NCBI GenBank assembly: GCA_002104905.1
Contig: MCFE01000159.1
Span: 62,001 to 126,000, forward strand
Length of the DNA: 64,000 nucleotides
Source: Basidiobolus meristosporus CBS 931.73
Taxonomy: Eukaryota; Fungi; Basidiobolomycota
Reading direction: 5' to 3'
The notes beneath the pieces were generated by a model, which worked only from the letters and a program-made list of their open reading frames with translations, had not been told where the DNA came from and searched no databases. The translations under genes and the position numbers were made by a program. Positions 1,972-16,154 of this stretch are shown in pieces (positions within the stretch are counted from its first letter, which is position 1; every line of letters starts with the position of its first letter).

Positions 1972-3024
1972 TATTAGTATGGTTCTCAGCTTGGTACTGA
2001 CTGCGTTTGAATAAAAACCTAATGTTGAAGTACGTTTAGTTAAAGAGCAGAGTATCTTCGTATACAAATGGCTTACAAAGATGAAATGGGACAGAAGGTG
2101 AATAGGTAAGGGCTTAAGGAGCTGAAGAGAGAGAAAAAGATATAGCCGACATAAGAATTGATGACCTTGGGCTCCTTCTGAGGATCACAGGTAATTAAAT
2201 CAATGCATCTCATTCTATTAAGAGGAATGTTATTTTGTGATCTTGATATTTTATCAATACATATCCTTAAATGCTACTCCACCGACGAACATTGAATTGA
2301 TTTGCCATTGTAGAAAAGTCATTTTACTGTTCAAGCGCTTATTTAGACGTCGATTAGGCTACATGAAGCATATTGACTGGTTTGTAAATTGCATGCTGCT
2401 TAGATGAAGCCTGCAATATTGTGTATTTGTTTAAATGCTGCATGGATTTATGTAATCTAACTATGAACTATCTCGCCTCAGGTTCAATGCCACGATGATG
2501 GTAACACAAACCTCCCCAAAGTGTGTATTTCACTGTCCGTTTTACTTTATCAGCGTGATGGAAGATGCTATATTTAAACCAAGCAACTTGTTTATATTTG
2601 GGAATAAACTGTACGGATAGCCTACCTGTTCAGCCCAATCATTGAGCGAATGGTCAGGTTTGTGGTTTGTGGTTTGTGATGCACGCCTAGCATTATTAAA
2701 TTCACTATTATGCGATTTACCCTGAGACGGTTAGTTTTTCGGATTTTCGACGTGCATTTGCTCAACCACTTGTGCAATCTCCGTTTATTTTATCTACTGT
2801 CAAAATGGAGCTATTAATATCCGTTCGCAATTTGAGTATTTTGGTAACTCCGGTGTAAGTCTCTTTGTGACGACAGATATTTCTAGAGATCCATATAGAA
2901 TATCCAAACACGTTTCCGACGTGACTCCCGTTTTTTATAGTGCAACACGTAAACGGCCCCACGCATCGCCAACTGAAAATCGATCCCAACCTACCTGACA
3001 TAGTGCACAAGAGGCTCGAAAGCC

Positions 3025-6000
3025 ATGTTCACACTTCCTACTCTTTGTGAAAATTCTCACTTTTGGGAGGATATATTAAGCAATGAGTATTTTCTCGCTC
3101 AGCGTGCTCTAGGTTCCAACAATTCTTTACTGAAAAACGTCATAGGAACCATTCAAAATGTGTCAGTACCTCGCTTTACTTTACTATGGATAAATTGGCG
3201 TACTTGCAACGTTTCTAAAGTTGATACAAAGTATATTTCTGTTCACTAATACTTTCATATGTTCAGTTTGGATACAAAGCAAGCACCTTTCCGTATCTTA
3301 TTTCGGCCCAACAGGAACGGAGAAAGAATGCATCTAATAGCCGAGTCCGATTCCCGAGAAGGGATTGAAAAGCCGTGGAAATGGCTTGAAGGTATTGTCT
3401 ACAAGAAACCTTTGCTGAGCCTGCGAGGGTTATTCATCTCGTTTGATAGACCATCTCGTCAAAGAACTGCAGGCATTAGACGATCCGTTCGAAAGAGAGA
3501 CTTTTGTTCTAACGAAGATCAATTCGTTGGTATCAAGCTTGGACGCAGGAGATGATTCGGCCAATGATGAAAAGCTTAGAGCGGCAACGAGAGCATTTAG
3601 ACAAACATTCAATTTACCTATGAGTGAAAGAGTGGTGAATTTCTATTCGTGTGGGTATCATCGTAACTTTATGATCAACCAAGGCTGGATGTACATAAGC
3701 GAGCACTATCTATGCTTTTACTCCTTTATCCTTGGTATCGAGGCCAAAATTCAGATCCCGTTAAGAGATATAGAAAGCTTGCACAAAGAAATGTCCAAAA
3801 GAGGGTTGCTCTCGGATGCAATCAAAGTTATTACCAAAGATAAAACGGAGGTAAACGGGCATTTGTAGTAGACATACGGCAGCCTGTGGTTCAAAGCTAA
3901 CAAGAATCTTACCGCCACAGTATTTTTTCTCCAATCTGTTTCGTCGTGACGAGGTAAGCGAGCGTGATTGTACACGGTATCATTAGCAAGAGTTAATCTA
4001 GGATTTTGTAGACGTACGATCTCTTGGTTCAGCTAACGAACTTGTCGATGCAAAAGCTGTTGCAAAACGCTGCTATGGACTTCGCACCAGGGTTATCGTT
4101 GGATGCGCCAACCGCAGCAGAATCTCTCTACGACTCGTCAGACATTAAACTTGGTGCGAAATCCTCGAGCCAGAGTCTACAGAACCGCTTTCAAAAAATG
4201 ACCTTGAAAGAGGATCTCAAGCAGCAGAAACGGAATGCTGCGTTCCAGACAACCTTCCGCCTTCCGTCGTCGGAACATTTGCTTGTCGAGACAGATGCTA
4301 TTCTTTCTGTGGTCAATCGCGAAGAGAAGTATCACGGCAAGCTCAGTATTTCCGAAACATTCATCACATTCTCATCTACCGATGGACGATCATGTTCCAC
4401 TACCATTCCGCTGTTTGTCATTCGCAGGGTAGAGAGAATCAATCCCAAATCGAACCTGTGTGTCCTAGCAATCACTACCTGGCATCACATGAAAGTGGTT
4501 TTTCAAATACAAGGCTCGCGCAAACTCGGCGAAAGCTACTGCACAGCACTCAAGACCAATCTCAAAGATCAAGTCGATGCCATGAAAGCGCTCAAGCCGT
4601 TTTTGCAGACGTGTGCCTCCGAAGCTATCTTGAAGGAGAAGGATGTTCTGAAAAGCGGTGGGCTTGGTTTGAGGTTTGGGTATCCTGGCGATGCAAAGAA
4701 GTTGCGGGAGAAGGGGAAAAGCAAGTACTGGGCAAGCTATCTCAAAGACAACGGCCGCAACCTCACCATCCTAAAGTTCCCGGATTTCACTCGTCTGGTG
4801 AGAATTGGACTCCCGAATAATCTACGGGGCGAAATCTGGGAAATATGCAGTGGATCCATCTATCTGAGAGCAATGAACCCTGGCCTTTACGAGAAAATCA
4901 TCGACGAGAATGCTGGCAAAGTGTCCTTGTCAACCGAAGAAATCGAGAAAGACTTGAACCGCTCGTTGCCGGAGTATCCGGCTTACCAAATACCAGAGGG
5001 CATCGACACGCTGAGAAGAGTATTAACGGCGTATTCTTGGAAAGATCCTGCCCTTGGCTATTGTCAGGCCATGAACATCGTCACATCGGCCATTCTCATC
5101 TATATGAGTGAAGAGCAAGCGTTCTGGACCTTGAGCGTGCTCTGCGATCGATTGCTCCCTGGATATTACAGCACATCAATGTATGGCGCACTTCTTGACC
5201 AATCGATCTTCGAGCACTTGGTCGAACAATGCATGCCTATTCTACACGACCATTTAAAGAAGACCGATATCCAACTGTCGGTGGCCTGCTTACCCTGGTT
5301 TCTGAGCCTCTTCATCAATACCATGCCGCTATCGTCTGCCTTCCGGGTGTTGGATTGCTTTTTCCTTGAAGGGCCGCAAGTGTTGTTCCAAGTGGCTCTT
5401 GCAATTATCAAGATCAATGGAGACGAGCTGATGGAGGCAGGTGACGATGGTGCATTTATTCACACGCTCAAACATTATTTCACCAAGTTGGATGATCCCC
5501 TCTACCCAAATAGCAAAAGCCCAAGGGCAAAATTGTTAACCAAGTTCCACGAGCTTATGTTGGTTGCGTTCAAGGAATTTGCGCATATCAATGCCGAGTG
5601 TATCGCAGAGCTGCGCAGGTCCCACCAATTCCGGATCGTTCACAATATTGAGAGCTTCACAAAACGTACGCATATTCGGAACCTCATTGACACGTCAAGG
5701 TTCAACAAAGAAGAATTATCGGTCATTTATGACAAGTTCTACGATGTGCAGTTCTACAGCAGCAAAAAGCAATCAGAAAAGCCTGACCTCAAAATGGACT
5801 TTTGGAATTTTCGGAAGTTCCTAGGCACCATTACCCCGTGGGCTATCATGGAAACTAGTACTGAATCTCAGCGGCTATTGAAGGGACACGGGTCATTAGT
5901 GGCCCAGAAGAAGACTGTAGGCAGCTCATTCATCGAAAAACTATTCAAATATTTCGACAAAACCGAATGCGGGAGCTTGTCCCTTCAAGACATCATCAAC

Positions 6001-6717
6001 GGTCTCCAGGACATAATGTTTGGTGATCTGATGTCGCAGATCCAACTTTTCTTCCACCTTCACGACAGCGATGGTGATGGCTTCTTGTCCAAAGAGGATA
6101 TTCTACAATTATCCGAGAGCTTCCTGTTTCTCTTCCGAAAAGAGAAAGATGATCGGTATCTTCGGGCGGTTTCCAATCTCCTCCAGAACTCCATCCAGTA
6201 TTCCGAATCTGCTTTGCATTCGGCGGATCCACAGGTCTTGGAAACTGTGGACGGAAACGGCGACATCCTCAGCACTGTGGTGGAAAGAGAAGATGATGGA
6301 ATAATTGTGTCATTGCCTACATTTCGTATGATTGTTCTCACTGACGAAACATTGGAGCAGTTCTTCGATTACAAGTTCGCCGCATCGTTCCAACTGACGG
6401 CGAATTCTAGCACTGATCGACAGAAAGGCCTTGGCCGAGAGATCTTTGAATCACTGCTTAATGAAGGCTCGCGCCTCGCCGACCGCGTGTCTCAATTTCC
6501 TAAAAGAAAGCTCACCAAGAGCTCGCCTGTCCCGGATGTACATTCACAAGTAGAGAATCTGATCGATATCTCGCCGCCATCACTTCCATCCTCAGACTCC
6601 AGCAAGGATCCCCACGAAGAGAACGACGAAGATGAAGATGATTTAATGGCCGTGGATCATCTACTTCGACATCTGGACGAGCCTCACAAAGAAGGTTCCA
6701 TAGTCGATTCTCCATAG
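3025..6717 (+). CDS. GYP2: GRAM-GRAM-TBC-EF-hand Rab GTPase-activating protein (Gyp2/Mdr1, TBC1D8/9 family)
   Basis: TBC motifs EIEKDLNRSLP and GYCQAMNIVT; GRAM-like segments (NFYSCGY...QGWMYISEHYLCFYS; YHGKLSISETFITFSS); EF-hand DSDGDGFLSKED. GT-AG introns join 3025-3163, 3267-3387, 3447-3849 and 3921-3951 (approximate) to the long exon ending at 6717. Confidence 0.92.
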
Positions 6718-7115
6718 CTGAGCGTTCTTTGTTACACTCACAAAACACAGCCTCATTTCTTCTTTCCACGACTTTAGAGGAGCCTCAGACTGCTCGATTT
6801 CGATATATAAGTGTCTACGCCTGTATACCTTTACACCTTCAATGTAATAAAGATTCACCAGAGTACATGTTACATTCTAGACACCTTTTTTACAAATGCC
6901 AGGGCTGCTCTATTTCCCTGAGTCTAGTGACAACTCGTTAGAGAACGAGAGGTCAGGGCAGTGCTAAAGATAAGACACTCTCATAACCAACAGTGAATTT
7001 ATTTCTAGCCTCTAAATGCCACTATAGGTGTTTAGGACTGGGAAGGTGTATTTATACATAAATTGATTCAGTAGCTCCAGATATTCGTATTCACAGAAAC
7101 ATCGCCAGCAGTGTA

Positions 7116-8191
7116 TCACTCGTCATGGGGATCTGTTTCCTCAGTGTCGGCCACCTCGTCAGTCCGTTGGAACTTATGTGACTCCTCCTCCTCTCTTTCT
7201 TCTAATTCTAACGCACGGGATCTCTTACGCGCGGCCAATCTGACCAAGGCTCGCTCGCGATTTTCTCGAATTCGGCGTAGCTGATCCGCCTCAATATCAG
7301 CACTGGAGCCTGTTAGCTGCACCCCACCATCAGCATCGACCAGGGGGGCTGTATTATCTTCTGGCAGATTACTGCCAGTCTCTTCGTGGTCACCGAAACT
7401 CCATTCAGTGAGGGTCTCGGGTCTGTATACTCCTAATTAACCACCACGTAGTTCTTATATTCTGAAAGGTTAGCTTACCGGTTATTGTCGAGCTGGACCT
7501 GTATCTCTGTTGTAATACTCATGAGCACTTGCTACGTTCCATGCATTCACTATAAACATACCAGGTGCCGTTTTGCGATTAGAAAGCTCTGTCTTGATCA
7601 ACTCTTCCCGAAAAACCTGTTGTGTAGGGATGGTCAGCTTCGTGTTGTTGTGTTATCAACGTTTTCACTACCTTAAGCCTTCTTTCCGAACACAAGTTTT
7701 CGATCTTTTTTATTGCGTCTGGAAAGCACATTTTAGGAAACAACTGATGGCACCATAGTTGATAAAAATCCAATAGATGCTGGAGATCTTCGAACTGTAG
7801 TAAATGTAACGAATTAACGAAGCTCCGGCGAGATACGTCCATAGAAAAGTTACCTCTTGCCCTTTACCCTTGAATTTCAACTTGGGGCCTTTCTCCTTAA
7901 TAAGCATCAAGCCATTTGGTTGAAGTAAACTAGGCAAAAATGAGATGAGCGAACCCGTTTCTTTCAATGATTCTTTTGCTATATGGCAGTTTACCGATTG
8001 GCATCCAATTTGGGCAGTGGCTCTCTCCTCTGACGAGTCTTGACTTTATCGAGATTCTCCGCGGAGAGGGAGCTGGTGGAGATGGGCTGGTCTAATTGTT
8101 GGTTCTCTTCCAAATCCCCCACTTGCTCATCCTCGAAAGGTGCAGAAGGGATTTTGTTGCCACTTTTAGCGTCTAGCTCGTATTCAAACAT
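7116..8191 (-). CDS. CSM3: Replication fork protection complex subunit Csm3/Swi3/TIPIN, multi-exon
   Basis: Swi3-domain text across exons: EPLPKLDANRLLQPNGL...KLKFKGKGQE|FEDLQHLLDFYQLWCHQLFPKMCFPDAIKKIENLCSERRLK; C-terminal DQLRRIRENRERALVRLAARKR. Start codon uncertain. Confidence 0.88.
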
Positions 8192-8778
8192 GAGTGTTGC
8201 TATCGAAATTATCAGGACTCTCACTACTCAGTCTAGTAAACACCATTTCGCGAGTGCCATCTCTCAATTATGTTTGTTTATGATTCAGGCCTAGTATTAT
8301 TGATTGGTGTGTCAAAGATATGCGGTTGTTGCTCACCTACTCCTCACCTTATGCCGGAAGTTAATCGGGTAACTAACCAACCTTACGAGAGTATTTCCTA
8401 ATCAGATCACCACGCCAATCGTAGCGAATTAAGGTAAAAATATCCTGGATATCTATTTATATTTTTTAATGGAATGTTCATGATCTGATAGGTTGAGCCA
8501 ATTATTTCCACCATTGATACGTCTCCGACGCGTTTTTGACAACCGTAGAGAAACTGTCATTGGATGTTCAAAAGCCATTCCTCAAGGACAGCTATCACTC
8601 TCTGGGATCGTTCTTGTATCCGTATTTCGAAAATTCGGTTCCCTTCTTTGGACATTACAATAATATCCCAATCATTCTTTTTTTCTCTACTTCTACTTCG
8701 CTTAACGAAGTGATATTACCTCCGAATCTCGAACCCTTCGTTCGACTCTGTATGGATCTCGGTTTAGCAAAGTACTGT

Positions 8779-10124
8779 ATGCTCCGGCTCCAACTCCTCT
8801 TACTTTTCGGCTTGAACGCGTTTGTTCGCGGGATGGATGACGTCCCCGACAATATTATTGGGGGTAGGTGTTTAGTCACACGCGCCTTGTCGCAAATGCT
8901 AATCTCTTTATAGGAAGTTACCTCGATTCCAACTGTGGCCCGGATCTCTACTGCCTACCGGTGGAAGATGAACTATGGCGACCACTTGAAAGTGGGCTTG
9001 AGAATGGGTTTGTTAGGTGGAACAGGTACTACCCCACTTTCTCAACTTACGTCAACATATCGCTATTCAACACGGAGTCCGAGGTGCCGGTGAAGGAGTG
9101 GCACCACTACAAAAACGAAGGCCTACTGGTTATCAACAACTTCCCTTCCAGCTGGTTCATTGGGGTGAATTTGACCGCCAACGTGACTCAAGAGTTTTAC
9201 TTCTATATCACTGGCCCCTATACGCCCACAGTTGTCATCCCAAGAGGTCCCAGCTTTTACATACAAAGTAGGTGGTTTCGATGTACTTGTGTCTGCCAGC
9301 ACATGTGCGTATTTCTCTATCTACCGAACAGGATTTACTAATGTTGATGCGGGTTGCTAGAACCGGTAATATTGCCCGTTCATTCCAGTCCTGCCACCAC
9401 CTCCGTGTCTTCCTCCCACATCAGTACTTCTACATCCTCAACCTCTACCACACATTCATCTGCCGTCGCTACTATGACTCCAACTGCTGTTGCACCGTCG
9501 CTAGGCGCACAAAACTCAAGCTCCAACAATCTCTCAGCAGGCGCGATCAGTGGGATCACCGTTGGTAGCGTGGCCGGAATTACGATAATTGCTTGATATC
9601 CTTTTTTCACGCGATCACCTTCCTGGTCTACACATTCCATGCCATCTCCATCTTTCCTTAACTTTGTCTCCCTTACTCTAGTCTATTTTCTTCGACGTAG
9701 ACGCAGAAACCAAGCACACTGCTATGTGGCCAACACGGATACTGATTCCGATCCCTCATTGGTTCGCAGCCTCCATTCCAGCTCAGCTGATGCTCCCGAC
9801 CTTGAAGTAGATGCCGCCATGGAGATGGCCGAGCCGTCAAGCCCCGTAAGGCGAAACTCGCTTCGCCTGACGGTGAAGGGGGCCCAAGAGCTTGCCCATG
9901 CCTACCGAAAGATGCTCACTAACCAGGAAATGGCGGAGGAAAGCCCGGCCCAGAACCAGACTCGGATCTTGTACAGTGATGAGCTGCTTCGTCGGGAGTT
10001 GGCGGCCGACGGCCACGGCGTGAAATATGTCTCTACCGCGCCAGCGATCGTTGTGATGGGTGACGACCAACAAAGTCTACATAGCATGGCTGCTAATACT
10101 TCCGATTCGAGTGAGATCCCTTGA
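8779..10124 (+). CDS. Single-pass type I membrane protein, Mid2/Wsc/Skg6-like architecture (signal peptide, small extracellular domain, Ser/Thr-rich stalk, TM helix, basic stop-transfer, cytoplasmic tail)
   Basis: ATG 8779 MLRLQLLLLFGLNAFVRG; two GT-AG introns (about 8866-8912 and 9268-9360); S/T-rich exon; TM GAISGITVGSVAGITIIA|CLVYFLRRRRR is only completed if the AT-AC intron 9596-9676 is removed; stop at 10122-10124. Confidence 0.8.
9596..9676 (+). other. U12-type (minor spliceosome) AT-AC intron, 81 nt
   Basis: 5' end ATATCCTTTT, branch point TTCCTTAAC at 9654-9662, terminal AC at 9675-9676 (14 nt after the branch motif). Removal restores the frame (TG+T = Cys) and an intact TM helix; no GT-AG solution gives a full TM. 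Confidence 0.92.
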
Positions 10125-11634
10125 GAAATCCCGGCCACTTCCTCACCTGCATCAAACTCATCCACCCAATACCCCGCCCACCTCAAAATACCCTTTGATT
10201 GTGTAAAAACCTCTGTTCCCCCACCCACACCCACACCCTTTCCCTTCACCTAATGTAAGTAAAGATCATACCCACCGCTTGACCTCATTTGATAAGCTGC
10301 TGGTTTGTGTGCTAGATCAACTTCATTTAACCAAGTGGGCGAAGGTCCTATATCTGGCTGATCTGTTGCACATTTGCCCAATAACCATCACGATGCTTCA
10401 TCCCGCTGGCTTCTGCGGGTGGCGGCAGAAGATGGCGCGCGATGGGCGGGATGGTCGATCTGCCATTCTAGACCATAACACAAGTGTAACCAACAGATCT
10501 GACCGCAAATCCATTTTCACTACCCATGGCTCATTGGGGCTGTTTCCAATTGGTAGCCCCGGCTGCTTGGAATAGTAGGATTCTAATGTCATCAATTGAT
10601 TGACCACCTGACCGGCTTTCGTATTTGGTTGGACAGTATGACAAGCCTAGGGGTTTCGGTCGTTTCTGGCGCGTCGAAGGTCCATTCTGCTTCGTTCAAT
10701 TCTTTCTCGAGTCCACCAGCACCCATCCAAACTCGGAAAACCACTGGCTGAGACCTCCTTGATACAGCCGCACAGTGCCGGAATGTACCCAACTGAATAT
10801 TGACACAGGTGTGAAGCTGTACGAGAATCTTGCCACTCCTGACCGGAAACAGATGGGTGTGTCTAGCCTCGAGCTAAGCTGCTCTGAATCCTATCGGCGA
10901 AATAGCTTGAGTTGGCCTTTCTACAGCCTATCCCCCGAGCCGGAAATTCCAAGAAAATTCGGATATACGCCCTTGGGAGAACGATTCGAATTGTCAGGTA
11001 TGCGTAGTTCTGTCTAGTAAACCCTTTCATTTGGGGGGTAGTGCGCGGTTGAATTTCCCAATTGCCACTCTCCAAGGTCTTAGTGTGTAGACAGGTAGCC
11101 TCGGTGGAGTGTCAGTGGGGTAGGAATTTTATCCTGCTCCAGGAGTATTGTGGATTTGTATTAGTGCAATGTCATTTATATTGGAGGGTAGTTGGACCAA
11201 CATATCAAATTTGTATCACAATTTCTAGTTGATTGGTAGCAGTGGGAGTTTCAGCACAGAATTCTTGCGTGCTGGTGGTGATTATCAAGGGTTCATACAA
11301 GATTGCTATCACCAAAGTTGCTCCCATGTACTCTAGCCCTCTGAGCTATTGCTCATTGGAATCTAGGCTGGTCCTGTTTGCAGACCCTAAGAAAAAAATT
11401 GAGAAAAGACCTGCAGAATGCCATCATAATATCAGCTGAACTCCAAGTGTCTTGAAACAAACTACTTGCAATATCTCTGGTTCTAACTACTGAGCAAACA
11501 TGCAGACATATTTTTCAGGAGCAGACTAGGCCAACTAACATTCATACCAAATCTGGTAGTCAACTGCTTGTTACTTCCACCAATAATTGCAACTGAGAGT
11601 TTGAAGCAAAAACACCAGCTGAATACCAGCTAAT

Positions 11635-11814
11635 TGCTGTAAAGATTTGTAATCACACCTATATATTCACTCAACTTAGTCACTTGGACCATTACCTACA
11701 AATCTCAGAGAATTCTGACAAAATTACTTGTAATGATTTACTAGTAATATTTTCACCAAAACATCAGATACCCAATACAGGAGATTTCTCAAAGTTGTCC
11801 AAACAGCTCCAAAC
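11635..11814 (+). repeat. Truncated, diverged Copia LTR (5' half)
   Basis: Begins TGCTGTAAAGATTTGTAATCACACC, aligns by eye to the first about 180 nt of the LTR at 14645 and breaks off at AAACAGCTCCAAAC. Confidence 0.8.
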
Positions 11815-11853
11815 TGTTGTAAGAGTCTTGGAGATATACAAATTTTTACAACA
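11815..11853 (-). repeat. 39-bp miniature LTR consisting only of the two LTR termini
   Basis: TGTTGTAAGAGTCTTGGAGATAT (identical to 12728-12750) joined to ACAAATTTTTACAACA (matches the other LTR end); 8-bp terminal inverted repeat. Confidence 0.8.
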
Positions 11854-11888
11854 GGATTATCCTCATTTCCTGGCACTGTGGCACATAC

Positions 11889-12234
11889 TGTTAAGAATTT
11901 GTAATTCCACCTAAATATTCACCTAACTTAGTCACTTAGATCATTACCTTCAGATCCTAGAGAATACTGACCAAATCCTTGTTGGGATTTACTTGGAATA
12001 TTTTCACCAAAATACCAGGTACCCAGAACATGAGAACTCTCAAAGTTGTCCAAACAGGCCTAAACTTTGCACACATGCTCTTGGGAGCTTCCTTAACCTA
12101 TTCTACATGTTTGTTAGGCCAAGACCATTTAAAAATATAAATAGTACTTTTACATTCAATAAATCATCAAGTGAAAACTGCATAATCTACTTGTCCTCCC
12201 AATCACTTCCAATATCTCCAAGATTCTTACAGCA
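11889..12234 (+). mobile_element. 5' LTR of a Copia element
   Basis: TG...CA ends, clear similarity to the other copies, followed directly by the PBS and gag. Confidence 0.9.
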
Positions 12235-12247
12235 GGTTATAAGCCCC
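12235..12247 (+). promoter_or_regulatory. Primer-binding site of the Ty5/copia half-tRNA(iMet) type
   Basis: GGTTATAAGCCCC directly abuts the LTR 3' CA and resembles the GGTTATG(A/G)GCCC PBS of Ty5 and Drosophila copia. Confidence 0.7.
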
Positions 12248-12265
12248 ACGCTGTCACTCTCTGCA

Positions 12266-12727
12266 ATGTCTACTACTACTATTACTGGAATCTTTCCCTC
12301 TGCTGAAAAGTTGGATGGATATAACTACCAAGTGTGGAAGGTGAAGGTGAAGATGAAGATGCTGCTACAAGAAAGTGGCCTTTGGGATACTGTCATGGGA
12401 GAAGAATGCCCTCCTAAAAATGTGGGAGAGGAAGCCTTAAAGTAACAGAAGAAAGAACAAAGTGCCTTTAACTGCATTTGCCATAATGTTAAAGACAAAC
12501 TGCTAATTCAATGCTCAAGAGCAAAAACGGCAAAGAATGCCTGGAAGGCATTAGAAGACACCTACCAGTCATGTTCAGCTGCTAAGAAAATGTATCTGAG
12601 ATGAAAATTCCTTACTACAAAGATGCTGCCAGGAGAAGAAATGAAAAACCTGATTTAAAAAAATTACCCTGCTGGTGGATGAGATGGAATCTGTGGGCAT
12701 ACCAGCTACTGATGAGGAGGTGATAGT
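12266..12727 (+). pseudogene. Copia gag N-terminal fragment (UBN2/Retrotran_gag_2-like), interrupted by an inverted LTR
   Basis: MSTTTITGIFPSAEKLDGYNYQVWKVKVKMKMLLQESGLWDTV...K*QKKEQSAFNCICHNVKDKLLIQCSRAKTAKNAWKALEDTY...YLR*KFLTTKM; in-frame stops and a frameshift. Confidence 0.9.
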
Positions 12728-13076
12728 TGTTGTAAGAGTCTTGGAGATATTGGAAGTGATTGGGAGGACAACTAGATTATGTGGTTTTCACTTGATGATT
12801 TATTGAATGTAAAAGTAGTATTTATACTTTTACATGGTCTTGGCATAACAAACATGTACAATAGACTAAGGAAGGTCCCAAGAACATGTGTGCAAAGTTT
12901 GGGGCTGTTTGGACAACTTTGAGAATTTTCATGTTCTGGGTACCTGGTATTTTGGTGAAAATATTCCAAGTAAATCCCAACAAGGATTTTGGTCAGTATT
13001 CTCTAGGATTTGAAGGTAATGATCTAATTGACTAAGTTCAGTGAATATTTAGGTGGAATTACAGATTTTTACAACA
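12728..13076 (-). mobile_element. 3' LTR (reverse orientation) of the Copia RT-RNaseH segment
   Basis: 349 bp, TGTTGTAA/TTACAACA ends; on the minus strand it is directly preceded by the polypurine tract GAGTGGGAG (13077-13085). Confidence 0.93.
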
Positions 13077-14644
13077 CTCCCACTCAGCTAAATGTTTATA
13101 CTGACTAGTCCTAATTTTGACCTAAGATATTCAAACTTGTCTCTAGCTAATGGTTTGGTAAATATGTCTGCAATCATCTCTTCTGAACAACAGTAAACTA
13201 AGCTTACTAAGTTATTCTCTATAGCTTCACTAATGAAATGATGTCTAATATCTATGTGCTTAGTTCTACGATGAAAAGTTGGATTTCTACCTAATTGTAT
13301 ACATCCTTAGTTATCTTAAAATGAAGTAATAGGCGTTTTTTGACATAGGCCTAAATCTGTAAAAAGCTTTCTTGATCACATTGCTTGTTTGTAGCTTCAC
13401 AGGCTGTCATATACTCTGCCTCTCTGGTAGAAAGTGCTATGGTTGGTTGCTTTCTTGAATTCCTTGAAATTGCCCCTTTACAGTAATGAAAGGTGTATCC
13501 TGTGGTGGAACTTCTGTCTTCCAAACTCTGTCCCCAATCAGCATCAGAGTATCCCACAAGATCCTGTTCTGAGTCCTTATAAGTGCATTTTAAGCAGATA
13601 TCAGCAGTGCCTTTTAGGTATCAAAAAATCTGCTTAACTGCTGCAATATGATCAGATCCATAATTCTGATTATGTTGGCTGACAACTCCCACTGAATATG
13701 AGATATCTGGACGTGTTTCAAGCATTATATACATCAGACTGCTAACCATAGATTGATAAGGAAAGTCAGGGCTTTCAGATGACACCAAGCTCTCTTGATT
13801 TGGTTGTGTTTTGACCAAGTTTTAAGGTTTGTTTCCATTGGGGTAGCTGCTGGTTTACAGTCTTCCATTTGGTACTTCTTTAGTATATCTTGAATATATC
13901 TGGATTGGCTTAGGGTAATAGTCTGGGTACTTCTGTCTATGGAGAACTTAATCCCTAAGTAGTAACTGAGTTCTCCTAGATTGGGCATCTTGAACTCCTT
14001 GGATAGGCTGGCTTTAGTCACTTCCAATGTTTCTAGGTTATTGGTGGCTATAACAAGATCATCCACATATAGAGCTAATAGAACTGGATTTGCTCTATCT
14101 GGCTTATACTATATACTATAGTCAGCATTACTCCTTTTGAAACTCAAAGATTTCAAATAAGAATCAATCTTGCAATTCCAGGCTCATGGTGATTGTTTAA
14201 GACTGTATAGTGACTTTTCAAGCTTGCAGACCAAATGGGGGCTATCTTGGTCAACAAACCCATCAGGCTGGTCCATATACACGTCCTCATCAAGTTCTCC
14301 ATTCAAAAATGCAGCTTTTACATCCATTAGATGAATAAAAAACTTATATTTGGCTGCAATAGCCAATATTGATCTGATTGCATTAAACTTGGCCACCAGT
14401 GCAAAGGTCTCAGTATATTCAAGTCCTTTTATTTAAGAGTATACTTTGGCCACAAGTCCTGGGGCTATTTAGGGCCCCTTTTACAATCTGGGGTTCATCA
14501 ATATGGACTAAATCGGCATAGGCTAAGTTTGTACACTCATTGATATAGTAATTTGGGCTATTTCTTGTCTGATTGGATCTCCAGGCATTTGATACTGGAA
14601 TGATCACTTCTGGAATATTCCTGGGCACTGTTTTAGACTGAGCC
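13077..14644 (-). pseudogene. Degenerate Copia reverse transcriptase-RNase H with PPT
   Basis: RT motifs MDVKAAFLNGELDEDVYMDQPDGF and LYVDDLVIA; RNase H GYSDADWGQSLEDRSSTTGY...SRKQPTIALSTREAEYM and ADIFTKPL; stops, frameshifts and a deletion at the RT N-terminus. Protease and integrase are absent. Confidence 0.95.
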
Positions 14645-14993
14645 TGTTGTAAAGATTTGGAATTCCACCTAAATATTCACCTAACTTAGTCACTTAGATC
14701 ATTACCTTCAAATCCTAGAGAATACTGACCAAAATCCTTGTTGGGATTTACTTGGAATATTTTCACCAAAATACCAGGTACCCAGAACATGAAAATTCTC
14801 AAAGTTGTCCAAACAGCCCAAAACTTTGCACACATGTTCTTGGGACTTTCCTTAGTCTATTGTACATGTTTGTTATGCCAAGACCATGTAAAAGTATAAA
14901 TACTACCTTTACATTCAATAAATCATCAAGTGAAAACCACATAATCTACTTGTCCTTCCAATCACTTCCAATATCTCCAAGACTCTTACAACA
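14645..14993 (+). mobile_element. Copia LTR, forward orientation, inverted partner of 12728-13076
   Basis: 349 bp; 11 mismatches versus the reverse complement of 12728-13076 by manual alignment (about 97%). Confidence 0.93.
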
Positions 14994-15064
14994 GTAGCCT
15001 GTGGAGCCTCTGAGGAGCAGTGTGGCTAGGAAAGCTTTTTAAAGACTTATGACATGGCCAAAAG

Positions 15065-15620
15065 TGTTGTAATTATTGAGCTTTCACTTAAATGCTCATG
15101 TAACTTAGTAACATAGATCTTGTTCTGTGATTAGCCTTCTGTCCTCACCAAATTACCTGTTGGGATTCACTTGGAGTAATTTCACCAAATTGTCAGGTAC
15201 TTAGATTATGACCTTTCTCAGAGTTTTCCAAGAGACCCCAAGCTTTACACACATATTCTTGGAACCTTCCTTAACAAGCTCTGCATGTTTGTTTGACTTT
15301 CATCATCAAGAGTATAAATACAATACTTTTGATGAATAAATCTACAAGTGAATAACATGCAACTTCTCTAGTTCTCCACATCACTTCCAATGTTCAGGTT
15401 TTATTTACAATATGTTCCCCAAACATGTTATTTCTCAAAGCTTTCCAAACAGCCCCGTATTTGCACTTGAGACCTTCCTCAGCATGTTTCATATTCTTTT
15501 GTTGCCAAGACCATGTAAGAGTATAAATACTACTTGTATGCTCAATAAGTCATGAGGTGAGAACCATATCATCCACTTCTACTGCCAGTTGCTTGCAGTG
15601 TCTCCAAAACTCCTATAACA
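15065..15620 (+). repeat. Two older, diverged LTR copies in tandem (15065-15412 full length, 15413-15620 3' part)
   Basis: TGTTGTAATT...TTACAATA with recognisable internal blocks (GTTGGGATTCACTTGGAGTAATTTCACCAAA; GTATAAATAC; TCACTTCCAAT); the second piece retains GCCAAGACCATGTAAGAGTATAAATACTAC. Confidence 0.75.
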
Positions 15621-15823
15621 GTCTATTTTTTGAGAGGTCTGAAGTACCTTACACAATAGATGCCATTGCTCACTAAGGCATCATCTTCTTCCTTCTTGTT
15701 GGGGCTTGATATTCTTCATTTTTCATCTAAAAGACCTTCATTTACAAAATTTAAAGTCAGATCCTCAGTTCTGGACTTGTGGGATGATACAAGGCCATGA
15801 AATCTCTCTGTCAAGCTATTCAG

Positions 15824-16154
15824 TGTTGTAAGAGGCTTGGGGATATTGGAAGTGACTGGGAGATAAGTAGATTATGGGGTTGTCACTTAATGATTTATTT
15901 AATGTAAAAGTAGTATTTATACTTTTACATGGTCTTGGCATAACAAACACAAAGAATAGACTTAGGAAGGTCCCAAGAGCATGTGTACAAAGTTTGTGGC
16001 TGTTTGAACAACTTACCTAATTTTCATGTTCTGGGTAAATATTCTAAGTAAATCCCAAGAAGGATTTTAGTCAGTATTCCCTGAGATTTGAAGGTAATGA
16101 TCTTAGTGACTAAGTTAGGTGAATATTTAGGTGGAATTACGAATTTTTACAACA
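15824..16154 (-). mobile_element. Solo LTR with intact 5-bp target-site duplication
   Basis: TGTTGTAAG...TTTTACAACA flanked by TTCAG at 15819-15823 and 16155-16159. Confidence 0.93.

Follow-up and report, generated by a model that had tools for sequence, protein, structure and literature searches.

The last of the three introns of gene K493DRAFT_407323 of Basidiobolus meristosporus CBS 931.73 is very probably a genuine U12-dependent AT-AC intron, ancestral to a family of Basidiobolus paralogues, kept in most of them and most likely spliced constitutively. It is found on the + strand at positions 9596–9676 of the window, by which we mean the whole stretch of 64,000 nt of contig MCFE01000159.1 which we have analysed. 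The intron is 81 nt long, has phase 2 and lies inside the segment which codes for a transmembrane (TM) helix. Its junction, 9595/9677, is already annotated in the GenBank/JGI gene model and is used by the public coding sequence (CDS). A preliminary description of this DNA had placed a U12-type AT-AC intron within the TM-coding segment; the signals, the reading frame, the public CDS and six further genes which carry this intron all bear it out.

The product of the gene has 382 amino acids and will be called P0013. The locus which we retrieved from the assembly (L011, GCA_002104905.1, MCFE01000159.1) shows 100% identity with positions 2752–16124 of the window. The public protein maps letter for letter on segments 8752–8865, 8916–9266, 9363–9593 and 9678–10121, with split codons for Lys156 and Cys234. 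Exon 1 (8752–8863), defined by this exact mapping, contains the start codon, the signal peptide, residues 1–37 and the first base of codon 38. It is followed by a U2-type intron of 50 nt (8864–8913, GTAGGT ... GCTAAT ... TATAG). Exon 2 (8914–9267) codes for the conserved beta-sandwich ectodomain (CGPDLYCLP ... RWN..YPTF); it is supported by the mapping of P0013 and by pLDDT values of 75–94 over residues 45–160. A second U2-type intron of 93 nt (9268–9360, GTAGGT ... ACTAAT ... GCTAG) separates it from exon 3 (9361–9595), which contains the Ser/Thr-rich stalk and, from about 9543 onwards, two thirds of the TM helix on its N-terminal side. The 3' end of exon 3 is the TG of the split Cys234. Exon 4 (9677–10124) supplies the third base of this codon, LVYFL (9678–9692), RRRRR (9693–9707) and the cytoplasmic tail with its conserved helices SLRLTVKGAQELAHAYRKML and YSDELLRRELAADGHGVK; the stop codon is at 10122–10124. 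All these features are on the + strand.

The signals of the third intron were located by pattern searches. The 5' splice site ATATCCTTT (9596–9604) includes the donor core /ATATCCTT (9596–9603), and its 9 nt are identical in the seven introns which we have compared, this one and six homologous ones. The branch-point box TTCCTTAAC (9654–9662), with the core TCCTTAAC at 9655–9662, agrees with the consensus TCCTTRAY, and the intron ends with AC (9675–9676). In U12 introns the branch-point box is expected about 10–15 nt upstream of the 3' end; here the distance from the branch A to that end is 15 nt. The donor, the box, the AC, the TGA and the CTAG (9678–9681) listed in the preliminary description are all found where it had put them. 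In splicing, U11 and later U6atac would pair with ATATCCTTT and U12 with TTCCTTAAC; cleavage after the AC would then join TG to T and create Cys234, which is situated in the TM helix, in its middle-to-C-terminal part.

The reading frame gives the same result. The junction region reads ...ATT GCT TG/ATATCCTTTTTTCACG...CATCTTTCCTTAACTTTGTCTCCCTTAC/T CTA GTC TAT TTT CTT CGA CGT AGA CGC AGA. When 9354–10124 is translated in a single frame there is only one stop, the TGA at 9594–9596, made of the exon TG and the first A of the intron. It separates a Ser/Thr-rich open reading frame which ends in ...GSVAGITIIA from another with ...LVYFLRRRRRNQ..., and both are in the same frame. Excision of 9596–9676 joins TG to T (Cys) and gives ...GITIIA-C-LVYFL-RRRRR: a hydrophobic segment of 23 residues followed by five arginines. 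As had been claimed, the 9595/9677 junction is the only one which yields a TM helix with an RRRRR stop-transfer like that of the homologues. The spliced product ...IIACLVYFLRRRRR is that of the public P0013, which reads ...GITIIACLVYFLRRRRRNQAHCY... around the junction, and it aligns with its homologues without any gap, for example with P0001 (...VTIVACLFYILRRRRR) and P0003 (...VTTIACLIYFIRRKR).

In the 64-kb window a combination scan found a compact pair of donor and branch box only at this place. From 1000 dinucleotide shuffles we estimate a chance frequency of about 0.05 per window for the strict triple motif; at this rate chance alone should produce it tens of times in the whole genome, so that further evidence is needed. 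The position of the intron on the sole stop, the match of the spliced product with its homologues and the six other genes with the intron place it far beyond chance.

The window also contains RTATCCTT words at 2261, 16710 and 53854 (+ strand) and at 1091 and 41546 (− strand), none of them with a branch box within intron range. The total of six such words compares with a mean of 4.8 in the shuffles; since this count is at chance level, the other five are probably not introns. An Rfam scan of the 64-kb window found no minor snRNA and no other family, and there is no paralogue of the gene elsewhere in these 64 kb.

By mapping proteins onto their genomic loci we have found six further genes, from two Basidiobolus species, with an AT-AC intron of phase 2 at the homologous codon. 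In B. ranarum the orthologue P0001 has it at L001:3833–3909, with split codon TG/T; this gene is syntenic with ours, as RabGAP-TBC/GRAM and Swi3 genes are found upstream in both species. B. ranarum P0002 (L002:3773–3847) has the split codon TG/T and B. meristosporus P0003 (L003:3788–3858) has TG/C. The other three are also from B. meristosporus: the P0004 gene (L008/L009:3216–3300, AT/A), the P0019 gene (L012:2386–2465, GG/G) and the P0011 gene (L007:3242–3340, GC/T), the latter with its intron in the same alignment column as the others. All seven introns start with ATATCCTTT, have a (T/A)(T/G)CCTT(A/G)A(C/T) box 11–15 nt from the end and finish with AC; the distance from the branch A to the 3' end is 15 nt in the window intron, as against 11–14 nt in the paralogues. 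Their lengths are 81, 77, 71, 75, 85, 80 and 99 nt, mostly not multiples of 3, and their interiors are unalignable: only chance words of 7–8 nt are common. The proteins in which they are found are 24–51% identical. Invariant signals at one codon, with saturated interiors between them, argue for selection on the U12 signals and thus for a functional, inherited intron. As to the alignment of orthologues suggested in the preliminary description, the same U12 site is found in the syntenic B. ranarum orthologue and in five paralogous genes; three genes of the family do not have the intron.

The preliminary description also expected that gene finders designed for GT-AG introns would be misled here. 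This is the case for three relatives, but not for the window gene, whose public model already uses the AT-AC junction. The public model of the P0002 gene (JASJQH010008232.1) stops at the TGA (L002:3771–3773), and the exon C-LIYVARRRQK... and the tail lie unannotated downstream. In K493DRAFT_343781 (P0004) about 199 nt are removed with a GT-AG pair (L008:3118–3316), a cut which deletes the whole TM helix; the sequence supports instead the 85-nt AT-AC intron, after whose excision the product reads ...WVVVGIGASCLVTVLVSA-I-LIFVVRRRH. In K493DRAFT_334152 (P0019, on MCFE01000042.1) the 80-nt AT-AC intron is partly translated: the model enters it as '...GYPLIPNLFEFTRLP...' and then removes a GT-AG pseudo-intron of 32 nt, which is implausible. 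These three public models (K493DRAFT_343781, K493DRAFT_334152 and one of B. ranarum) are wrong at this intron and can be corrected, which is a modest practical value of the comparison.

Some other features of these loci should be mentioned. The TM region of P0020, a B. ranarum relative of P0019, looks mis-spliced too. The P0004 gene is present on two contigs, MCFE01000004.1 (L008) and MCFE01000621.1 (L009), which differ in 26 of the 2000 bases compared; they would come either from a recent duplication or from alternative haplotypes. Next to the P0019 gene, in a gene of the NTP_transferase/GMPPB-like type, there is a candidate U12 intron of the GT-AG subtype (GTATCCTTTAAC ... CCCTTAAT ... CATAG) at L012:4391–4469. 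It has 79 nt and phase 2, and its removal joins the frames as ...AVEKKDE-D-VIDNEAGFVE.

The protein was taken at first for a Mid2-like sensor with poor conservation and no evident deep relatives. We do not find it so. An exhaustive HMMER search with exon 2 as a query gave 12 relatives, and a word search seeded with the best of them, P0001, listed the family with two source species, B. meristosporus CBS 931.73 and B. ranarum, in which the gene has at least 18 relatives. Exons 4 and 2 gave nothing in word-index searches; these cover only proteins with a length similar to that of the query, so that it is this length window, not an absence of relatives, which explains the result. The Pfam model PF14610 (Psg1/Ykl077w) is matched with E ≤ 0.01 by 10 of the 14 aligned members, and its gathering score of 30.1 bits is passed by P0003 (32.0), P0006 (39.5) and P0011 (32.4). 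P0013 itself has no match with PF14610 at E ≤ 0.01, and its four exon translations taken singly match nothing in Pfam at E ≤ 1, Mid2 included. Nor does P0013 match the Mid2 model (PF04478) at E ≤ 0.01; the best Mid2 match in the family is that of P0011 (E = 0.027, 14.7 bits vs a cut-off of 23.2). What agrees with Mid2 is limited to the general architecture and to the UniRef label of P0013, 'Mid2 domain-containing protein'. Judging from these profile matches, the gene probably belongs to a distant branch of the Psg1/Ykl077w family, expanded in Basidiobolus.

An AF2 model of P0013, calculated with the family alignment as input, has an N-terminal helix (residues 3–29), beta strands across residues 50–155 in a beta-sandwich which is confident over residues 45–160, a disordered Ser/Thr stalk and a TM helix (215–251), with RRRRR after it. 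Two cytosolic helices of the model coincide with the most conserved motifs of the family, SLRLTVKDAQ.LAH.YR.ML and YSDELLRRELAAEG.GVK. The sequence and the model have the features of type I topology: a signal peptide, an N-terminal domain, a single TM near the C-terminus and a basic start of the cytosolic part. P0013 is thus a predicted type I membrane glycoprotein, with a signal peptide, a beta-sandwich ectodomain, a Ser/Thr stalk, a TM helix, a polybasic stop-transfer and a helical tail. A Foldseek search of the model against the PDB gave only generic matches with FN3/Ig-like beta-sandwiches (E ≥ 0.006) and no functional lead. The look-alikes in the Atlas are hypothetical fungal proteins, some of them labelled Psg1 or Kre9_KNH, which we take only as a lead.

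The history of the intron can be read from its distribution in the family. The TM-coding region is uninterrupted in three genes: P0005 (L004) and P0006 (L010) of B. ranarum and P0016 (L013) of B. meristosporus. We have placed 19 family proteins in a maximum-likelihood tree, rooted at its midpoint, whose deepest backbone nodes have low support (56/35). Intron-bearing genes are found on both sides of its deepest split, drawn by the midpoint and with weak support: one side holds P0004, P0019 and P0011, and the other the P0003/P0002 and P0001/P0013/P0014 clades. The genes without the intron are nested among these: P0006 is a sister of P0011 with 100% support, while P0016 and P0005 are in well-supported clades of their own. 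Since the intron is present on both sides of the split and three genes do not have it, it would go back to the base of the family and have been lost later in some genes. The distribution is best read in this way: ancestral presence and at least three losses are far more parsimonious than at least four gains at one codon. The intron should thus be older than both the radiation of the paralogues and the split of B. meristosporus and B. ranarum. The recent, lineage-specific gain proposed in the preliminary description does not agree with an intron common to the orthologue and the paralogues on both sides of that split, even if the split itself is weakly supported. In summary, the ancestor from which the Basidiobolus paralogues descend would already have had the intron, whose signals would have been under selection in most lineages, with clean loss in at least three.

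The flanks of P0006 (L010, B. ranarum, without the intron) and P0011 (L007, B. meristosporus, with it) are not syntenic within 2.5 kb. The contrast between these two genes represents either a loss at the level of the species or a difference between paralogues.

A gain could still be placed further back: the U12 intron may have arisen after LECA, at the birth of this receptor-like family in Basidiobolus, and not have been inherited from an older Psg1-type gene. This we consider unlikely, although several observations fit it. Among 1.84 billion representatives, the relatives of the ectodomain exon are proteins from Basidiobolus or without a locus, together with one environmental, transcript-like contig (P0010, with an uninterrupted CDS); a metagenome scan with the tail motifs gave no relative, and the density of minor introns in B. 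meristosporus is unusually high. However the family is linked to the Psg1 family, which is found throughout the fungi, and the gain of minor introns is in general very rare (PMC10639083). A gain in the window gene itself is excluded by the presence of the site in the orthologue and in paralogues over the whole tree. If it were true, an origin with the Basidiobolus family would be a rare case of post-LECA minor-intron gain in fungi. A further step would be that the TM-embedded U12 intron was created with the Psg1-like family in Basidiobolus and has been retained in most of its dozen or so paralogues because slow minor splicing co-regulates the whole family; we find this rather improbable.

An inherited intron, which we prefer, might in addition act as a regulated switch. 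Minor splicing would be slow or conditional, and retention would lead to the TGA inside the TM and to a tail-less or shed ectodomain. That retention would end translation at once, at 9594–9596, was correctly noted in the preliminary description: the TGA appears because a TG/Y Cys codon meets an intron which starts with A. Besides the window gene, the three genes which are nearest to it (P0001, P0002 and P0003) have this immediate stop. It is not a feature of the family, however: the split codons are AT/A, GG/G and GC/T in the genes of P0004, P0019 and P0011, whose first stop comes 47, 28 and 8 codons later, respectively, and three paralogues do not have the intron at all. Minor introns are reported to work as rate-limiting switches in human cells (PMC3728624), and in the last intron of a gene retention would give a transcript with no downstream exon junction. 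On the other hand the product, with 16–17 TM residues and no stop-transfer, would more likely be degraded than be a functional isoform. A regulatory role of retention we consider very unlikely; the inherited intron is most likely simply constitutive.

Two readings do without a U12 intron, and we give practically no credit to either of them. One is an ordinary GT-AG intron at 9565–9681 (GTAGCG ... CTCTAG, 117 nt), with the U12 motifs as a coincidence. It is in frame, it uses the CTAG which the preliminary description called a decoy, and the strict motif has the low but finite chance rate given above. Nevertheless its donor GTAGCG is unlike the other donors of the gene (GTAGGT), this GT-AG intron is absent from the public model and six other genes have U12 signals at the codon of the AT-AC intron. 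Its removal deletes GSVAGITIIACL, whose residues align one by one with the TM of every homologue, and leaves a hydrophobic stretch of only 13 residues. On account of this TM homology we have rejected it. The other is that there is no intron, so that the gene either is broken at the TGA, as a truncated protein or a pseudogene, or is read through the 81 nt: these nucleotides are otherwise open, with no further in-frame stop, and one B. ranarum model (P0002) does terminate at the TGA, but the tail beyond the 81 nt shows strong in-frame conservation (SLRLTVK..., YSDELLRRELAA...) and must therefore be translated, the homologous inserts of 77, 71, 85 and 80 nt are not multiples of 3 and have interiors without similarity, and the 27 residues which read-through would add have no counterpart in the homologues.

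The U12-type AT-AC intron has little weight as a discovery: its junction is in a public gene model and the species has already been published as rich in minor introns. The family offers a natural series for the study of minor-intron retention and loss in a fungus, with one U12 site still present in at least seven genes and absent, by loss, from at least three. Larue and Roy (2023, PMC10639083) give a total of 249 minor introns (0.554%) for B. meristosporus, whose density is among the highest outside Amoebozoa. Their criteria for the presence of minor introns include at least two minor snRNAs in the genome, and they have also analysed the age of the B. meristosporus genes with minor introns (PMC10639083). 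Compared with their catalogue (PMC10639083), the window intron is from the same species and has the same features: a /ATATCCTT donor, a TCCTTAAC box near the AC end, a phase different from 0 and a short length. It is present in the annotated CDS, which is the basis of such catalogues. The gene is of a different kind: typical minor-intron genes are old, conserved and of the housekeeping type, whereas this one belongs to a fast-evolving family of membrane proteins which has expanded in its lineage.

The gene may be compared with the retention switches of Younis et al. (2013, PMC3728624): it has one U12 intron, its other introns being of the U2 type, and retention would abolish the full-length product. 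It differs from those switches by a stop-on-retention geometry which is not conserved in the paralogues.

As to the protein, the predicted product resembles yeast Psg1/Ykl077w by its signal peptide, a glycosylated lumenal or extracellular domain, one TM close to the C-terminus and the basic residues which follow this TM. Yeast Psg1 is a type I protein of the Golgi and COPI vesicles, processed by Kex2, O-mannosylated and needed for the stability of Pma1 (PMC5607100); it is only in yeast that the cleavage by Kex2 and the role in Pma1 stability are known (PMC5607100). The window protein differs from the Psg1 Pfam model by its long cytoplasmic tail of about 140 amino acids, with two conserved helices which lie outside the model. 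In Saccharomyces there is no minor spliceosome. With sensors of the Mid2/Wsc type (PF04478) it has in common a Ser/Thr-rich stalk, a single TM and a cytoplasmic tail; unlike Mid2, it has a folded N-terminal beta-sandwich.
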